From Phallusia mammillata (taxonomy: Eukaryota), in NCBI GenBank assembly GCA_965637545.1, contig OZ281501.1:7130001-7194000 (forward strand): 64,000 bases of DNA, read 5' to 3'. The notes beneath the pieces are model-generated. The model did not search any database. It was not told the DNA's origin and was given only the letters and a program-made list of their open reading frames with translations. Shown here piece by piece: positions 46,578 through 64,000 of the stretch (within the stretch, counting starts at the first letter, position 1; each line of letters starts with the position of its first letter). The position numbers were made by a program, and so were the translations under genes.

Positions 46578-49500
46578 GTTGACCTTCCGGCTGACACCGA
46601 AGCCCCTGTGGTGATAGAACGAGTTCACAATCTGACTGTTCAGCGGGGATCGGACGCATCTTTCCGGGTGCGATTTCACGCCAAACCCGAGCCCGAAATC
46701 AGCTGGTACAGGAACGAGATCAGACTTGAGGAATCTGACCGAGTCAGCTGGTTTTATCCTGAAGACAAAGTGTGTGAACTAATCATTCGCAACACAACGA
46801 CTGATGATTCGGGATCTATCTCTGTGCGAATTAGCAACATTGCCGGACAAGCTGGTAGTCAAGGATTCCTTCTAGTACAAGGTAAGAAACAAACTTACAC
46901 ACGTTAAGGGCATTACTCCTTGCCTTTTTGGGTAAACATTTACATTGACGTTAAAAAGGCAGGCCTTTAAAGAATAAACGTTGGCGCTTTTTCCAAGCCT
47001 TCGGTTTTAAAGTTGTTTTTCCGAATTCTTCTGTTATAATTTTCTTTACATTTCGGGCATTAATTCTACTCTAAAACCTACTACATCTTTTATCTCATTT
47101 TCTTCTTTTTCTTCAACTCCTTATATTTCTCATCAACACTCGCAGAAACCAAAGAGGCTTTGTGCTTCACCGAAGAACTCCACGACATCACAGCACACGA
47201 GAACGACAAATCAGCTATTTTCGAGTGTTCACTTTCTGACCCGAAGTCCCAAGTGCAGTGGTACTTCCGCAGTGAGTCTGGCGCCACCGAGCGCGCGTTG
47301 CACGACGGCGAAAAATACCAAACACAGTCAGACGGTTCTGGTCGTTTCTTGCGTGTCAGCTCAATTGCGCTATCTGATTCTGGAAGCTTCTCTTGTGTCG
47401 TAATGACAGAACAAGGCGAAGAGATGCGCTCAACAGCTCAACTATCTGTTGAAGGTATAAAACGCAATTAAGTCTTTCCTGAATGAAAAAACATACGTGG
47501 TAATGCTTGGGAGACCGGCTTAATTTGGTATAACACCTTCAAAAGGCCTGGCGTACCATGATTCACTTATGACAAACCTCTCAGAGTTCTCTTTTATTCT
47601 GTTATCTTTTTCATCCTAAATCGTTGCGATGGTCTTCGTTTCTGATCAACTTAACAGTTTTATCAAATTTCTAATTTATTTTTTTGCGCTTTCAGCTGTG
47701 CCAAAGAAAATCCTGTCCGGTTTGAAAGATGAAACTGCCCGAGAGGGAACACCTTGCTATTTTACGGTCGTTGTTTCACATCAAGACGTGTCAGGGGTAT
47801 GGCTCAAAGACGGGCACGAAATCGAGGTAACTATCTGTCGTTTTAATTTTAAAACAACCTCTTGTAAATTGCCCACAACCCTTCTAATGGCATTAATGGG
47901 GCGCAACTTTGAAATTTTTTTCACTAAAATGCGTTTCCATTTGCAGACAAGCGCCAAGTTTTCAATGGGAGAAGCCGCCAACAAAAGAACTTTGACAGTT
48001 ACCGACGTGAGGAAGGGAGATGAAGGAGTTTATGAATACGTGTTTAGCGGATCAACCACCAAAGCTCGCTTAAACGTTGAAGGTACGCCTCAATGTATAT
48101 TGTAAAACTAAAAAATACAACTTTTTGATCGCCATTAAATGTATGCTCTCAAATATTGTTTAATTTGCAATTAGTGTCTACGATTGCTCCACTTATCGTT
48201 TCAAATATTTTAATGTCTTATTCTTTTCAGCAATGACTGTTGAAATTTTGAAGCAACCAAAAGATCAAGTTGTGTTCGCTGGTGACGTAGCGACCTTTGA
48301 GGTCAAGGTGTCACGTGACAACGCTTCCGGTACTTGGACTCACAACGGTTCGCCCGTAGCAAGCTCCAAAAGGTGGGTGACCTAAAATGAACTTTTGTAA
48401 TGTGCCGAACTTTAGCCAGTTACTTTGTTCAAACGATTTCCTTAAACTGTCTCGTTAAGTAACCCACGGCAAATGTTGCGACATAAAACGTTTCTAAAGG
48501 TTTCAAAATAGGTTTTACGTAAGCTTGAACGCAACTTGTATGCTATAACGCTTATTTTAAAATCTGCACTTTTGTGATTTTAGAATCATCGCGACGTCAG
48601 ACCGCAACAAACACATTCTGATTATCGAAAGTGCAAGTCACGAAGACTCAGGAACTTACACTTTCAGTGTCGGAGGAAGTGAAGCCACTGCCAACCTACA
48701 AGTCAAAGGTAAACTAACTGAACGTTGCGAGTCCCGTTAATTGCATACTGGTCAATCGCATAGCTCGTTTAATTGCATCTGAATTGTGAAGCGATAAGCT
48801 ATCCTTTGTTAAGAAAATAATCTGCTTAATCACATGGTTCGGTTAACCACATAAATAAGTTTGGCAAAATGGCTATGCGATTAACTGGATTTGTCTGTGT
48901 TTAATAGTTTGTCCTCTTATTTTGAACAAATGTTTATAAATTGGTTACCTCATTTAAATTCCATCAAGGCTTGATAATCATATCCCTTATTTCTTTCAAA
49001 AGTGGTCAACATTGCCGATGGTGTCAAAAACGTGAACACCGTCGAGTCCAACGACGCTACTTTCGAGTGCAAAGTCAACCAGGCTAACTACAGCAACGGC
49101 AAATGGCTGCACAACGGACAGGAGATCAAATCGGACGGTAAACGCACAATCCAAGTCGACGGCAAAGTACAACGCCTTGTGGTTCATCAAGCCACTAGTG
49201 ACGACAAAGGATCGTACTGTTACGTCACTGGCAGTGACGAAACCACTGAGGCCTCGTTGGAAGTCGCGAGTGTGGAAATCGCTGAGGCGTTACGCGACGT
49301 CAGTGAAGCGGAAACAGCGGCTGTTGAGTTGACCGTGACACTATCTCGCGGTGGTGTTAAAGGTGTATGGTTCAAAAACGGACAACGTTTAAAGGTACGA
49401 GTTTAATCTACAATTTAATGTTAAAATAAAAGCGTGTTTTGATTATATTAAAATGTAAAGCAAAAACTTTTGATATTTTGTGCTATTTACCTATGATTTA

Positions 49501-52500
49501 CCATTATTATCTCTTGGTCACAGGAATCAGCAAACTGCTCTTTGTCGACTGATGGCGCTAGACACATTGTCTCCATACGATCTCTATCTGTTGAAGATCA
49601 GGGAACGTATGAATTCAGAGCCGGTAGCAAATCCTGCAGTGCCCAGATCTCCGTTCAAGGTGGGTTGTATGTGTTTAACCCCCTGTGTCTGTCCTGGCGG
49701 CGCCTTTGGCCACATATGATTGCAAAATCTCAAATCTAATGCTCAATACTTTAAAATTCGGTTGTAGTTATGAAAGGTGACATGTAGGATTATATTTAAA
49801 AAGCTGGTATGGTAGCAACAGAACACCAACACTGTTTTCCCTCCAATAACCTTTCAACTTTATTCTCAGGTGCTCAAATCACCAAGCCTCTCGTCGACCA
49901 ATCGGTTTTGGAAACCGAAACAGCGGTCCTAGAATGCGAGGTTGCCCATGAAGGGGTACAAGGAAAATGGCTTAAAAACGGAAAAGCAATCGAAGCCGCT
50001 TACACACAAAAATACGAAAGCTCGGCGGAAGGTCGCATCCACAAGTTGGTCATCAGCAACGTGAGCAAACAAGAAGCTGCCACGTATGCTTTCAAGTTCG
50101 GAAGCGCCTCGACTACTGCTAAATTGGAAGTCAAAGGTGAATATGTTGTCCTTTCTGTTAATTTTTAAAATCTGATTTCTAGCAAAAACACCTTTTCACT
50201 TGTTAATTTATCTGGCATTGCACTTGAAACGTTTGTACTTTACAGCTGCATGTTCATATTTACTTGATAAGGGTATTCACATACAGACACTAAAGTGCCA
50301 TAATATTTCATCATGACTAATTTTCTATTCTTTTTCCAGCTGTCAAGTTCGCCAAGGGCCTTCGCAACATGACCGTCGCCGAAGGTTCCGACGCCATATT
50401 CAGCGTTGAGATCGCCAACGATGACGTCACGGGCGTCATGTGGCAGCGCAACGGCGTCACCTTGCGGTCGGACGATGTCAAATATCAGATCGAGGCCCAG
50501 GGCAATGTACACACCCTTATAGTGCTGGAGATCAGCAAAAACGACGAGGCGGTTTACAGTTGCCTTGCCGGTTCGGCTAAAACCAGCTCACGGCTTTATA
50601 TCGAAGGTGAATGGGCTGATAATGCGTGAATGCTGTTGTTGTTTTTTGGTGTTTTGAATGCTCTATATTGACTTGTTGCTGCCCGCACCCGGCGTGTTTT
50701 ATTTTTTGCAAATAAACACCCGCGAGAGATTAACACTTGCACACTGTTTTTGTTGTTGGTTTGGCGATGAAATGCGCTTTAACTAACCCTTGTAGAGTGA
50801 GATGACTGTAGCTTTGCACACTAACACCTAACTAACCGCAGTTGCACTGTATGTAGTTTTGGGATTTTGCATTGCTCCGAATTGATCTAAAATGTCGTAC
50901 ACTTGTATGCACGACCTAATATTGCACGTTCAAAACGATAGCTCTTTCAAACACCTGAACATTTAACCAAAAGTTAAAATAGTACTGTAAAATACACCAC
51001 TAATTCAGCATAATGTGACTAAAATGAACTGTTTAGATTGATGAAAACTTATATTTTTGTACTATACCACACGCTGTACATAAATGCACATGTAGTTTTG
51101 TTAAAAGCACACAACCACAACGGGTCTTTATTTTTTGTACCCAGTTGTGGAAATCATTCGCAAACTGACCGAGGTTCGTGCGATGGAAAGACGAACGGTC
51201 GAACTCACGTCTGAAGTCAATAACGACAACGCAAAGGGGGTTTGGTTGAAGGACGGTGTGCCACTGCAGGAAGACGAACGAGTACAGGTTAATAACAAAG
51301 GCCAGGCAGATCGAAAAAAAAAACTTTTTTATAGTTGTTAGGGACAATGTCTGTGGAAAAACAGGATGAAATTTTTGCTAGGAATGTTTTTTAGGTCGAT
51401 CAAAAATTTTTGCTAGTAGAATCTTGCAAGTTTAAACACGACTTTAAAATGCCTACTTAATCACATATTTAAGCTATTTTAACTACAAACGTAAAGGGTG
51501 CTGTAGCAAAAAGCATATCCTGGTATTACAAAACATAGCTTCAGGAAATAATTTACGAAAATAGTATGTAGATATTACTTTAGCTAGCTATTTCTTTGAG
51601 ATGCTGAATGTTATCTCCAAATATTTGAAAAATAAAAAAAGCAAACCACGCAAAAAGTAAAAACAAAAACATTCACAAAGAAACAAATCAGTTCAATTAA
51701 CATTTACAAACTACTAGATCATTCAACAAAACCGACTTCACAAGCTGGTAATAAACAATGCTCGTCCCACTGACACCGGGTCATACCAGTTCAAAGCCGG
51801 ACGGTCGACCTCAACCACTAAGGTTACAGTTGAGGAGGTACACGTGACTTCACGCATGAGTGACACGGTGGTCAAGGAGACGCAAACCGCCACATTTGAG
51901 TGTGTTGTATCTCACGATGATGTACCAGCTTCTCTATGTAACTGGTTCAGAAATGGAGAACCACTACAGGTATTATAACGAACTCAGCCATGAATTTAAT
52001 CAAAGGCAACTGTTTCCTAGCATCCCTTTTCGCAAAAAAACAATTTTGGGGCCAATAAATTTAAGTTGAAGTCACCGAAGTTTCTGTGTTAAAATTTTGA
52101 TTTCCTGATGTTCTAAAAAGTGACATCTGTATTATCTTTTTAAGTGATTTTTAAACGCACTGTTTAGTAAAAAAACAACAACTTTCAGTTAAAACGCTAA
52201 AAACGTTACTTACTCAACTTTAGATGTGTCAAATTTGTTTAAATGAGCGCCAAGCCCTAATACATCTTTATAAAGTCTATACACTTCGCATCGTCGATTG
52301 AATTTTTGACTAGAAAATGTTTAAACGGCATTTCATCATGCAGTTACAAATTGCTTTGCAGTCGGGTGAGAACGTTACACTAAGTGTAGATGGACGAGTT
52401 CATCGCCTAACTGTTCGATCGTGTTCATCTGATGACACTGCCGAATATTCGTTCGTAGCTGGAAAGGATAAATGTACAGCACGACTTGACGTTCAAGGTA

Positions 52501-57676: not shown

Positions 57677-59300
57677 TTGACCCGCCTCGAGTCATTGAAC
57701 CGTTACAGCCTGCCTACGTCATCGAAGGCAGTGCGGTAAAAATGGATTGTACGATCGACGGTGATCAGTTGGAAGTTCGTTGGTATAAAGGAGATAGAGA
57801 TATCACCGATGACCCGAGATTTAAGGTTTGTTATTGTAGCAAACCGTAGCTTCCAATGCAACGAAAATGATTTTCATAAATTGTGTAACAGTAATATTTG
57901 ATAGTGAAGATTAAAATCTGATTATCTACTATTTTATTTGCAGTGGAAATTGGAACCGAACTCCGGGCACTGTTGGCTTGTTATCCCACAATGTGTACCC
58001 AAAGACAGTGGAGAAATTCGTTGTCATGCCTCAAACTTCGCTGGTGAAGCGGTTTGCAGCACAGATCTCAGAGTTAGAGGTGAGAATAGAGAATTTTTTT
58101 TGCAGCACGTGATTTGCAATTGATAAATCATATTACATCGCATGATAAACCGCTTACTTAAGGTGTTACATATTGCTTTGCGATTTTGTATGAGAATGAT
58201 ATAATTTGTTGCGCAGTCTGAAACACACAGTTACATGTCACAAAATGTGTCTTATTTACACCAGAAAAAGGTTAGTTTTAAACAAATACACATGTTGCAG
58301 GACAAACATTTGGAAACTAATCTCACCTGAAGTACAATAAACCCAATACAAATGTCCATAACCCCTTAAATGACATTTATTTCGCGCACACAAATTTCTC
58401 TGTAATATCATAATCCGAATTCAAATCTACGAAATGAAATTGGTTTGTGCACGATTCAAGCGTACACTGCTTAACCGACATTTTTCCGCGAAAAGTGTGT
58501 GTTTCACCTGTCAAGCATGTTGTGATAAGACCGACATTAAGGCATTGCAATACTGAAACTGCTGTGCATGAACATTGGACAAGCTTGCCAACCACAAGTT
58601 GCATGAAAGGGGACACTTTTCACAAAGCAAGGTATGTTATGAGATAAGCTCTTCAGGCAACTCTGGTTAAACCCTAACACAAAAAATAACTAAAATAAAT
58701 TGAATCTCGACAATAAATTGAATTAAGTTACAGTTTGTATGCATGGTTTTATTTGGTACCTGCGTTTATTTGTGGTTTAGCAAATATTCCTGTACATTCG
58801 TAAAACTGAAATACATTTGTTTACAATTGCTATATCTAGATTCTAGACCAACAAAACAATGACTTTGTTTGTCGCAGAAACATCGGAATTGGACGACAGT
58901 GGCAAACAATATCTAAGCCACATTGAAATGCAACTTGTCAGAAATCCTACCAATTATGAAATAAGTTTGCCCGTGGACGATGTTACCACTGAGTTCTCTC
59001 CAATGGTAGCAGAGCCATTGCAAAGTACAAACGCAGTAACAGGCAAGGAAGCGAGATTTCAAGCGCGTCTGGCCTCACTGCCGCAGCCTGAAATAGCTTG
59101 GTACAAAGATGGAAAGCAGATCAAACAAGTGGGACCTAGACTGACGTCCAAATACCGGTTTTACTTTCAAACCCAGGCACATAGCCACACTCGTGGATTG
59201 ATAATTTCGCCAGTTGAGCCAAGCGACGCTGGTGTTTACGAACTAAGAGCATGGAACAAACTAGGCAAAGTGGCTTGCAGTGCTATGTTGACTGTTAAAG
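57677..59300 (+). CDS. TTN: Titin, two Ig modules after I15 (position equivalent to vertebrate novex exons)
   Basis: Exons 57677-57825 plus 57944-58079 form one I-set Ig (PPRVIEPLQP...WYKG...DSGEIRCHASN). Exon 58878-59300 encodes a linker plus an I-set Ig (PEIAWYKDG...DAGVYELRAWN). Both modules start and end in phase 1. Confidence 0.88.
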
Positions 59301-59645
59301 GTAATGGTTTTATCGACGAGCCTGTTAAAGGTTTAAACTCTCAAATGTTTTGCCAATATCTGATATACCTTAGCGTTAAACATCACAGATTCGTTGTAAT
59401 TACTTTAAAACATAGTAAATCATTTGTAAGATTTCTATTAGGCAACATTAACTGTTACCCCATATTTTACATGTCTATTTGTTGTTATCTGTTTTATTAA
59501 CATAACGATATTTTTATTTTCTCGTTGCACCTTTCGCTGTTTTCATTTTATCTTTCACACATTGCATTGCCATTTTCCTGTTTACCCGCCTTTTTGGTAC
59601 TTCACAAAAAAACATTTTTCATTGCGACTCATTTATGTGTCCTAG

Positions 59646-62600
59646 CAGTTATGGCAGCGAGTCAAACCCAAACTACCGAACCATTTAACACAATACGCAA
59701 ACCTAAACCTGCCCCTACTCGGCACATAAGCCACGTAACGACCAGATTAACCAAACCTTCTCCACCAGTCACCCCTACAGACATGTCACCCAGTCATACA
59801 GGTGAAGTCAAAAGCATCCCAGAGTCGCCAAAACCAATGCGCGGCCTTTCGATTCGTTTTATTCCGATGGTGACCACCAAACAGGATTCAATGCGCTCTT
59901 CTATTCGATCATCCACTGCACCGACAAAGAAGAGAGTCTCGTTCTCCGCGGAGCACGATCTTGTTCTCATCTCACCGACCTCGCCTCCGCTTACTCCCTT
60001 TAGCGACGATGATGATGCATTTGAAGAAGATGAAGATTACGAAGAGGAAGAGGCCGGGACTCCTACAATAGAGAGCCAGTTGCTATTGCAGAGGCAGCGA
60101 AATGTACTCTGGGATCAGGAAGACGAGCGCCATACGCGAGGACTGACCACATTGAAAATGAAAGTAAGGGATGCTCGCGAGTCGCCCGATCTGGTTGACG
60201 TTGTTCTAAGGCGTGAAGATCTTCATCCTGCAAAGCCAAATGAAGACGCACTAAAGGTGGAGGAAATACCAACTCAGAAAACTTACTCGCGTGGAGTACA
60301 TATTGACTTAAAGCGACAAGAACCGCAACCAGCTCAAGACAAGCAAACTGTGACTGAACGGAGAGACGTGTCTCGTGCCGAAATTAACGTATCCGACAGG
60401 CGACCCTACCCTAAGGTTACCGCCGTGATGACTAAGCCAAAAACATTTGAAATGCACGAAACTGAAAAGCAATCCACGGGTTCGCAAATCACTGGTCCCG
60501 GTACTGCTTCTACCGAAACACAGACTCAAGTTAAAACGAGGCCTACCTCTATGCAAACACGGCCAGACGTCGAGGCAAAGCAAACGTCTACCGATAGTGG
60601 GGTTGTAGCGAAAACACAGACGCCTTACCGTCGCACATCGGCATCTGAAACACAAACCCAGATGAAAACTTATCAAGGAACGCAAACTGAGGTTGCGACT
60701 TCGAAAGACTCAAAGTCAATGCAAACGGAATTTTCAACAGAAAAGGTTTTGCAAACTGCTACAGATGCCCGCAAAGCACCTGCAACTACCTCAGTTCAAC
60801 AGAACTTAATACAAAAGCCGACAGGCGAGAGGAAATCTGCACACGCAGAAATCCGCTTAGGCGAACAGCGAGCATTTTCAACAGTCACTGCAACAGTTGT
60901 GTCGAAGTCAAAGCCTTCTGGTATGACGACCCAGCTTTCTGACACTGCTGAAATTCAAACCCAAACACGGACGGATGTAAAAACAGAATCGACCCAAGCT
61001 ACACCAGCTGTGCGGACCATGGAAGTATCAACCCAGCGAAGGGAAGTTTCATCCACGTCCCAAACTCCTTCCCGACAAAGTTCGACGATGGAAACGCAAA
61101 CGCAAGAAAAAGTGTATAAGTTGACACAAACTGATATGAAACCTGCTTCCAGTGCAAAAATGATGCAGACCGACTTCACAGCAAGCAAACAGTCACAAGC
61201 TACTTCTAAACGAAGAGCTGGACATGAAATTGATACCCAAACGGACAAACCAAAATCAGATCAAAAGACAAACGTACACAAAGCTGAAGTTATTAAACCA
61301 GAAATCCCGGAAACGGTTAAGGCACCTGCAAAGCAAGGTATGAAACATTTAGAAATACATGCTGTCCATAAGCCTGGAATTAAAATTACACAAGTTGCTA
61401 CTAGTTCTGAGCCGGAGCATTTGGCCAGAACCAAGCGTATAATGAGTATCATAGATGCAACTGGGATCCAATCTCAACCAGAGACCAAACCAGGATCAGT
61501 ACAAGCGACACCAGACATGGGCAGCAGGGAAACTACAACAGAAGATACTGGTGTAGAGGCGAGAACTCAAACACCAAAGCATCGCACTTCTGTGACTGAA
61601 ACGCAAACTACTATGCAAACTTATGGCCAAACACAAACTGATGTTGGGCCAAAGACTGAAGCTAAACTGCTTCAAACCGAATTTATGTCGACCAAAGTAT
61701 CCCAGACCACAGCCGAGAGGCCGAAAGGTCGCGAGATTGATACGCAAACTCAGTTCGTGCTGACTAAAGCCACAATAACTGATGCTGAACCAAAGAAAAC
61801 TAATATCGCTATGGTAAAGATCCTTGAAACGCCGGAGGTGCCAACTTTTATTTCCTTTGTCGACAAAAAACAGCCAACAGAAGTCTCTCGAAAAGCTACA
61901 GGCACACAACCAATAAAACCTGAAGCTAAAAGCAGTGAAACTCAGACCCAACTTGACAAGACGGCCAGTGCTACCCAGGCTACACCGACCATTGATACAA
62001 AGGAAACATACACTGATACACAAAGCGTGGAAGCACGAACACAAACACCAGCAAAAGGGGCAACGTCCATGGAAACGCAAACGTATGAGAAAACTTATCA
62101 GACGACTCAAACAGATGCACCGTCCAGAAGAGATGCCAAACTTACCCAAACGCAGTTTACTGCTACAAAGGTATCACAGACTTTAGAGAAAGCGAAAACC
62201 GGGCGCGAAATAGATACACAGACCAGTTTTGGTGAGAACAAGGCTTCTGTATTTGCGGAAAAACCTTCTACACAAAAACGGCAACCGGAACAAAAATTTA
62301 AATCGCCCGAAAAGAAATTGCAGACTGTCAAAGTTGTTGAGGTCACATCGACTGAACTTCCAAAATTTGTGACTGTTTCGGGTGAAACAGCAAAGAAACA
62401 AGACAAAGGTCCTGAAGAAACCCGGGCGTTGACACATACTATGGAAGCTGCAGAAACCCAAACTCAAAAACAGGCGCTGCTAAGTGCGCAGATGATGCAA
62501 GAGGAATTGAAACAACAGAAACAGACATCTGGACCGGAAAAGGTTTCTCAAATTCAAGTTACTGAGGTTACCAAAAAGAAGTCTTTCCGAAAAGACGGTA

Positions 62601-64000
62601 GCAAGACTTTTGCTCTCCAGGAAACAATTGCTACACAAAAGGTGTGGAATCCAATTACACGAGAGTTTCAGGAGGTATCGGTCGAACAGAGCGAAATTTC
62701 TAAAGCCCCACAAGGTGTCCATCCAACTGAAAATAAAGTTTCACGAAAGTCTCAGGAACGCAAAGAGGAACTGCAGCCTGATTCTGGTGCCATTCAGCCG
62801 ATCGAAGTAGTTCGTGATGTGCCTTACAGAGCCGAGAACCTTGAAGTTGCCCATAAGCAACATTCTGTCAGCGTAAAGTCCGATGATCGGACGATAAAAG
62901 TTACGGAAACGATAACGGATACTACGAAACGTGTGTGGAACCCTAAAACGCGACGCTTTGACGAAATTCGTACCATAGAGGTATTGAAAGATGACTCCAA
63001 AATCAACGAACCGCAATTGGAAAATATTAGTCAGAAGACGAAAATTGAAGAAAAACAAGTGACACCATCTGACCGCAAAGATGAAACAATTGTCACTGAA
63101 AAAATGCCTCCGGTAGTATTGCCGGCCAAACAACTCGAGATTCAAAAGACTAAACTTGCTTCAGACGAACAAATTGATACGGACCACACCAAAAAAGCTG
63201 TTACGGAAAAGAAAGAAGTTAAGAAGACCAAACGGGTTTGGAATGCTCGAACTCGGAGGTTTGACGAAGTTGTGATTGAAGAATCAACACACGTTGTGAC
63301 CGAACCTGAAGTTGTTGTCAAGAAAAAAGCTCCCAAGAAAGATGAAACTAAGGCTCCAACGATCACCACCGAACCTGTTATTGAAGCTCACAAACGCGTT
63401 TCGGAGTCAGACGAAAAGGAAAAGAAAACTACCCAGAAGCTGAAGGATATTTCTAAACTGCCTCAGCTTACAAAGGCCCTAGAAGAAGAAATTACACTTC
63501 AACCTAAGAAAGACACTCCAAAAACAGCAACACAAACAACGATTAAAGCTGTAACTGAAGATGTTGTAAAGCCAAGATCACGAGACGAAACTCCAGTTGC
63601 GGATGACAAACCTGTACAACCCATTGCGGACACACCAAAGGTTTTAATTAAAACCGATTTGCAGAAAGAACCGGTATCAATGCCTACTAAACCTGATAGC
63701 GATCAAAAACGTGTTATCAAGGAAGTGGTTGTAGCAAAAGGAAAATCAACTGAAGTGCAGAAAAAGAACAAGACGAAAATGCCGGAATTGACACAAGCAC
63801 TTGCCAAGGAAATAGAAACTACGAAAGCTGTTCAAAGCAAGACTACCAAAGAAAAATCGAAGGTAGTTGAAGATGCGATTCTGCCACAATCATACAAAAC
63901 AGTTGTGGAACCACAGGAGGTTCGATTAAACGTGGAACCAAAACCAGAAGTCCATGAACCTAAAACAAAGTCAGAAGCCAAGAAACCTGGAGCAAAACTA
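59646..64000 (+). CDS. TTN: Titin giant unique exon (>1450 codons, T/K/E/P/V/Q-rich, predicted disordered), open to the window end
   Basis: Acceptor cctag|cag at 59645, phase 1, in frame with exon 58878-59300. Manual translation from codon 59648 to 64000 shows no stop. It is probably absent from the ORF track because no stop lies in the window. Composition becomes PEVK-like toward the 3' end. Confidence 0.9.
60500..62230 (+). repeat. Four ~100-aa TQT-rich coding repeats in the giant titin exon
   Basis: Units at about 60500-60775, 60941-61246, 61454-61756 and 61922-62230. Approximate consensus: ..ETQTQ..TQATP..VEARTQTP..S.ETQT..KTY..TQTD..AKL.QT.F..KVSQT..GREIDTQT. Confidence 0.9.

Follow-up and report, generated by a model that had tools for sequence, protein, structure and literature searches.

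A conserved lattice of TQT motifs in the titin of sea squirts, predicted to form a multivalent LC8 ladder in the I-band spring

The titin gene of the sea squirt Phallusia mammillata contains, within a giant exon of its I-band region, a dense array of TQT tripeptides that sequence comparison indicates to be a real, selected and conserved feature. The segment that carries this array is predicted from its sequence to be a disordered, cooperative and multivalent client of the LC8 (DYNLL) hub dimer, a reading that we consider probable, and the further proposal that an LC8 ladder stiffens the sarcomere spring is put forward more tentatively, at somewhat less than an even chance. The DNA analyzed is a stretch of 64,000 nucleotides of contig OZ281501.1, hereafter the window, which has no N at any position. 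An earlier sequence-only reading of the window had proposed the LC8 ladder. This proposal is strengthened by the conservation of the array at one place in four more species despite the turnover of its spacers, by a spacing of 10–14 residues with avoidance of 5–9, and by a specificity for the whole T-Q-T triplet accompanied by LC8-like flanks, and it is weakened by single sites that mostly score as weak or non-binding.

The 5′ part of a chordate titin gene lies on the + strand of the window (Table 1). An Ig domain matching titin I1 (1g1c) marks the start of the I-band, the tandem Igs at 50339 and 52948 match the titin entry 5jdd (proximal tandem Ig), and an I-set Ig exon stands in frame directly upstream of the giant exon; together these confirm the titin identity and I-band position that had been assigned to the segment. 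The order of I1, proximal tandem Igs and Ig-flanked unique sequence is that of the chordate titin/connectin I-band, and a matching order is found in three ortholog contigs. The upstream Ig exon is joined by an RNA contig to an exon ending near 58078, and it is 54–62% identical to its counterpart in the three ortholog contigs, which are ~70% identical among themselves. The acceptor of the giant exon is a tandem NAGNAG (59644–59648) that preserves the frame by either choice. Pfam finds no domain in the window part of this exon, the spliced model having been searched one exon at a time.

Table 1. Features of the titin gene and of the TQT ladder in the window (positions are those of the 64,000-nucleotide stretch).
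Feature	Position	Strand	Evidence or remark
Ig domain, titin I1 match	46590..46886	+	phmmer to 1g1c, E 2.2e-33; fixes I-band start (context)
I-set Ig exon immediately preceding giant exon; donor GT at 59301	58878..59300	+	Pfam I-set E 9e-17
Giant coding exon, open past window end	59649..64000	+	acceptor AG 59647–59648 (alternative AG 59644–59645); in frame with upstream Ig exon
Conserved N-terminal block of giant exon, before ladder	59717..60319	+	HISHV, RVSF, HTRG, IDLKRQ motifs; alignment and phmmer; orthology anchor
Repeat R1	60476..60784	+	anchors 60518, 60551, 60578, 60614, 60650, 60680, 60719, 60749
Repeat R2	60920..61270	+	anchors 60959, 60992, 61058, 61094, 61124, 61163, 61193, 61235
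Repeat R3	61463..61780	+	anchors 61466, 61499, 61565, 61601, 61631, 61670, 61700, 61742
Repeat R4	61904..62254	+	anchors 61940, 61973, 62018, 62039, 62075, 62105, 62144, 62174, 62216
Isolated TQT past ladder	62456..62464	+	exact motif
Start of WNP-motif segment; TQT at chance there; ladder's 3′ limit in 5/5 species	62630..64000	+	motif counts

Several short motifs surround the ladder. The conserved block ahead of it includes KKRVSF (59930–59947), an RVxF-type motif resembling a PP1-docking site that is kept in all three orthologs reaching this position; a phosphatase anchored there could control threonine phosphorylation in the ladder. The pentapeptide HTRGL occurs twice, on a strand of the upstream Ig (59186–59200) and in the conserved block (60131–60145), with both copies conserved across species, and this duplication may be either chance or a strand mimic. 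After the ladder, three WNP-type motifs are found at 62630–63280, and the orthologs have 5–22 copies.

The coding status of the giant exon is supported mainly by long open frames in five species together with the synonymous pattern. One RNA run, which is probably cDNA because it contains a template-switch adaptor, gives three contigs of 174–203 nt (depth ~3) inside the ladder and none in introns. None of the RNA contigs examined spans the joint between 59300 and 59649. A second run (X2) joins two upstream Ig exons, reads 74 nt into the next intron (59301–59374) and holds none of the giant exon; this read-through, whose frame into the intron is not conserved, would be explained by intron retention, by pre-mRNA or by an early 3′ end before the ladder. 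At 63366–64000, contigs of two putative-RNA runs are both 712 nt long and end ~70 nt past the window, possibly due to internal oligo-dT priming or a contig break. In run X8, one contig spans the whole ladder without differences, and just after it (62882–63092) a second allele appears with 10 substitutions and an in-frame 3-nt insertion.

The open frame at 59501–64000 (+) contains 21 exact TQT. These comprise the 18 between 60518 and 62224 and the two at 62456 and 63530 that had been reported, as well as one at 59666 that had been overlooked. The anchor variants described with them are likewise present (four MQT, three LQT, four SQT, and three TQA), and the example stretch quoted from the array is correct. 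Between 60500 and 62470 there are 19 TQT, compared with 2.4 ± 1.5 expected and a maximum of 10 in 20,000 composition-keeping shuffles. The division into four repeats stands (35–47% amino acid identity), with a measured length of 103–117 aa in place of the ~100 aa first given and anchors 10–14 instead of 10–13 residues apart. Each repeat has 8–9 lattice positions over ~92 residues, and the hinges between repeats are 66–77 residues long.

The repeats are old: third codon positions are only 0.29–0.34 identical between them, which is near saturation, and Tandem Repeats Finder detects no DNA tandem array remaining in the ladder. Retention of the anchors was measured by conditioning on one copy alone, such that a TQT was taken in one copy and the aligned copy was then read. 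The Q of TQT is retained in 51 of 51 cases, followed by the T at +1 (0.94) and the T at −1 (0.82), as compared to 0.36 for other T, 0.53 for other Q and 0.32 for the remaining residues. The statement that anchors are kept while spacers diverge is therefore upheld under this one-copy conditioning. Since the anchors persist despite near-saturated third positions, the comparison of the repeats indicates that the TQT triplet is under purifying selection.

Orthologous exons were recovered from four other sea squirts. A phmmer search of 1.84 billion representatives with the exon returned three matches, and a word search with the WNP region found a fourth; neither the window frame nor the block alignment recovered a homolog when used in word-based searches, a tblastn against phage sequences came back empty and is uninformative, and the Ig exon picked up three weak Ig matches (30–38%) in metagenomes. 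The orthologs are single open frames of 4181, 3470, and 2797 aa on three long assembly contigs, ending in an Ig, in addition to Ciona intestinalis XP_026691853. On the three contigs the Ig exon corresponding to that of the window lies just upstream of the giant frame and further Ig exons come after it, which makes the frames orthologs. The Ciona entry carries the annotation ‘proteoglycan 4-like’ as a gene of its own, and is probably a split gene model. The N-terminal block and the later WNP motifs are common to the orthologs.

In all five species TQT is in excess in the stretch bounded by the HTRG block and the first WNP motifs, with observed and expected counts of 19/2.5, 7/0.9, 12/1.1, 10/0.8, and 6/0.7 (each p=0.0005); the region of one ortholog was extended to its second WNP motif (residue 965), which only dilutes the excess. 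In the rest of the exon TQT is at chance in all five. A search of other tunicate titins, which had been suggested as a check, thus reveals a separate TQT cluster at the corresponding position in Ciona intestinalis and in three more species. The ladders of different species barely align (BLAST E 6e-5 to 5.6), and the fourfold repeat of the window is not evident in the four orthologs. Because the excess is kept at one place while the ladders hardly align, the motif lattice appears to have outlived its spacers. The five species nevertheless amount to fewer than five independent cases, as the three contig species may be more closely related among themselves than to the window.

The distances between anchors provide a second line of evidence. 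When anchors are defined as [TVISML]QT and pooled over the five species, 45 of 74 neighbor gaps measure 10–14 residues and none measures 5–9, where random placement gives 12.5 and 14.1, respectively. This pattern is robust to the use of exact TQT only, to the use of orthologs only, and to leaving overlapping sites unmerged. Several longer gaps are close to twofold or threefold multiples of 11, suggesting that intervening sites have decayed. Known LC8 rods are built from an 8-residue motif and linkers of 3–4 (KANK1) or 4–5 (Nup159) residues (bioRxiv 10.1101/2025.07.16.665182), corresponding to a period of 11–13, and the titin ladder fits stacked dimers with the same motif and a linker of 2–6. 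A floor of 10 residues is what stacked globular dimers would impose, whereas kinase sites would have no need for such a floor.

At the level of the individual site, the anchor follows the published rules for an LC8 client, with Q at position 0, T, V, I or S at −1 and T at +1, and non-phosphorylatable anchors (VQT, IQT, MQT, LQT) are present as well. Published work on LC8 indicates that the anchor by itself is insufficient for binding. The flanks were scored with a matrix of position counts that we tallied ourselves from the 79 binders and 32 non-binders in Table S4 of PMC6607443, which is distinct from LC8Pred and covers positions −5 to −2 and +2 only. The mean for 72 titin sites is −1.76, as compared to −5.48 for shuffled flanks (p=0.0002), where the region of one ortholog ended at residue 444 and gave 5 sites. 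The same matrix yields means of +3.35 for published binders and −1.12 for non-binders that bear an anchor, so that the titin mean lies near the non-binders. Position +2 is D, E or P in 34 of 79 sites (14.6 expected), position −3 is I, V or M in 24 of 79 (10.4 expected) and D, E or P in 3 (14.6 expected), and position −2 is S, G, E or Q in 37 (22.5 expected). These biases agree with the published rules, and position −4 fits poorly; disfavored residues at several sites include an aromatic (Tyr) at −4 (8, with 3.1 expected) and Pro at −2 (6 sites), and Asp is rare at −4. As predicted LC8 sites, a few look good and most look weak, with flanks that lean LC8-like overall. Mostly weak sites are also the pattern of KANK1, since its isolated peptides fail to bind while the array binds cooperatively.

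LC8 recognizes a client through an anchor and about five upstream residues, which add as a β-strand to one groove of the dimer. The other groove accepts the corresponding site from a second chain that runs parallel to the first, and where weak sites are closely spaced they are occupied cooperatively to yield a ladder. Applied to titin, each repeat would bind ~8–9 LC8 dimers and convert ~90 residues, with a coil end-to-end distance of ~7 nm, into a two-chain rod of ~30–32 nm. Here the rod length assumes 3.5 nm per dimer (from KANK1, 53 nm for 15) and compares with a contour of 35 nm per repeat, and the coil estimate assumes a persistence length of 0.66 nm. Four such rods (~30–33 sites, up to ~115 nm of a 225 nm contour) would be joined by the hinges and would pair two neighboring titin molecules, which would deprive this part of the spring of most of its entropic extensibility or turn it into a spacer of set length. 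The segment would then be a spacer pairing two titins with LC8 bound, and a soft spring with LC8 free. Stretch should favor binding, since the strand is extended when bound. Ascidian titin may accordingly employ LC8 as a built-in reversible cross-linker, in which case ~30 dimers would zip two chains together in the I-band as hinged rods reaching up to ~115 nm, and LC8 level, stretch or threonine phosphorylation would set spring length and passive stiffness; we offer this scheme as a possibility, with the odds slightly against it.

Comparison with known systems bears on what an LC8-bound ladder would do. In KANK1, sites that are individually weak and joined by short linkers assemble cooperatively into rods, with 15 dimers spanning ~53 nm (bioRxiv 10.1101/2025.07.16.665182). 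The KANK1 linker L2 resembles the titin ladder in being a long disordered linker of a cytoskeletal protein, with many individually weak sites and hinged rods of tens of nanometers (predicted in the case of titin). It differs in that its sites are mostly non-canonical and their binding has been shown, whereas titin has canonical TQT, about twice as many sites, four duplicated repeats, a place in a force-bearing sarcomere protein, and binding that is predicted. The dynein-light-chain-interacting segment of Nup159 (the Dyn2 ladder) shares tandem QT anchors with titin and forms a structural rod on two chains with linkers of 4–5 residues. Unlike the titin ladder, it has a handful of strong sites, belongs to a nucleoporin beside its own oligomerizing region, and works without mechanical cycling. 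The LC8-binding domain of ASCIZ/ATMIN also has many TQT sites in a disordered region, often with Glu at −2, but its mixed long and short linkers bind heterogeneously in the manner of a sensor, while the titin linkers are uniformly 2–6 residues. In layout, the exon is comparable to the N2B unique sequence and the Novex-3 unique region of vertebrate titin, which are large disordered, Ig-flanked inserts after the proximal tandem Igs, and N2B is where several stiffness-tuning partners dock (PMC8553726). The likeness is one of position and layout, as phmmer found no sequence match of the exon to N2B or Novex-3.

Within the LC8 reading itself, and not in addition to it, LC8 may bind for a purpose other than stiffening the working spring. 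The array could be an LC8 store, could dimerize a soluble, nuclear or short Novex-3-like isoform, or could form an intrachain loop clamp that opens under load to release hidden length. All of the sequence evidence for the LC8 ladder applies equally to these variants, ASCIZ-type arrays bind heterogeneously and sense LC8, and vertebrate novex-3 is described as a short isoform that is also nuclear (PMC6098106, PMC11178842). Against these variants, the uniform short linkers are closer to the structural rods of KANK1 and Nup159 than to ASCIZ. Against the clamp, the hinges appear too short for a fully parallel fold-back along a 32 nm rod, so that full intrachain pairing of neighboring repeats would be geometrically disfavored and partial looping possible. 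We consider this group of alternatives rather unlikely, though it is the most serious of those weighed here.

A different partner is a less probable explanation still, and we regard it as unlikely. The TQT lattice would in this case be a selected array for a thin-filament protein, a chaperone or another strand-addition hub, or a self-association β-zipper between titin chains, formed without LC8. Selection on anchors and spacing is real but does not name the partner, and the flank scores are modest. However, the LC8 footprint is matched in the triplet, in the acidic/Pro bias at +2, in the bias at −3 and in the 10-residue minimum gap, and we know of no other partner with a TQT-lattice signature.

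TxT motifs with a period of ~12 residues are a hallmark of the β-solenoids of insect antifreeze and bacterial ice-nucleation proteins, and a repeat that folds by itself in this way, with Q pointing inward, would compete with LC8 binding as an account of the array. This is highly improbable. Within a single repeat the period ranges between 10 and 14, and the ladder contains 1–4% Gly, almost no Cys and 19–28% charged residues. Searches of Pfam and the ESM Atlas give nothing on the ladder, and two AlphaFold runs model no solenoid and lend no support to self-folding, weak tests as they are (mean pLDDT 33 with a single sequence and 46 with a 10-row alignment; pTM 0.17 and 0.11). With no Pfam match, low pLDDT and a polar, charged composition, the segment is instead predicted to be disordered.

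It is scarcely credible that the array is an SQ/TQ cluster for ATM/ATR-type kinases, or a site of O-GlcNAc or another threonine modification that tunes the spring. All five ladders do contain an excess of TQ, and phosphorylation tunes spring segments of titin (PMC8553726). However, [ST]Q without a following T is not enriched in any species (p 0.14–0.60) and SQ is flat in the window (7, with 6.5 expected), the T at +1 is better kept than the T at −1, and the VQT, IQT and MQT anchors have no kinase acceptor. The binding of LC8 could nonetheless be switched by threonine modification. The notion that the array arose neutrally, as tandem duplication acted on a T/Q-rich low-complexity exon, is largely refuted: the four repeats of the window are indeed duplicates and their sites are not independent, but no DNA tandem array is left, the anchors persist where third positions have diverged, and the excess and spacing hold in the four orthologs alone.

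In the literature searched, outside of which many subscription papers fall, we found no work linking titin with LC8 and no paper on titin, LC8 and TQT, consistent with the original remark that no such array is known in titin. A review of N2B and N2A partners (PMC8553726) never names dynein or LC8, and human titin is absent from two prediction lists of human LC8 clients (LC8Pred and phage display). Multivalent LC8 ladders are already known, and the predicted one in titin is apparently new as far as this literature shows. Splicing, phosphorylation, oxidation and a small number of bound partners are known to tune titin stiffness, and to these the lateral pairing of I-band titin chains through a small hub protein in stoichiometric amounts would add a new route. 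If true, the scheme would make this segment the first part of a muscle spring to be switched by a ligand from disorder to rod, and would place the array among the largest reported for LC8. For the LC8 field, a natural ladder of duplicated 8–9 site units under load would allow tests of spacing, weak sites, cooperativity and force-promoted binding. For the sea squirts, it presents a lattice of short motifs that has been kept across the group despite almost complete turnover of the sequence around it.
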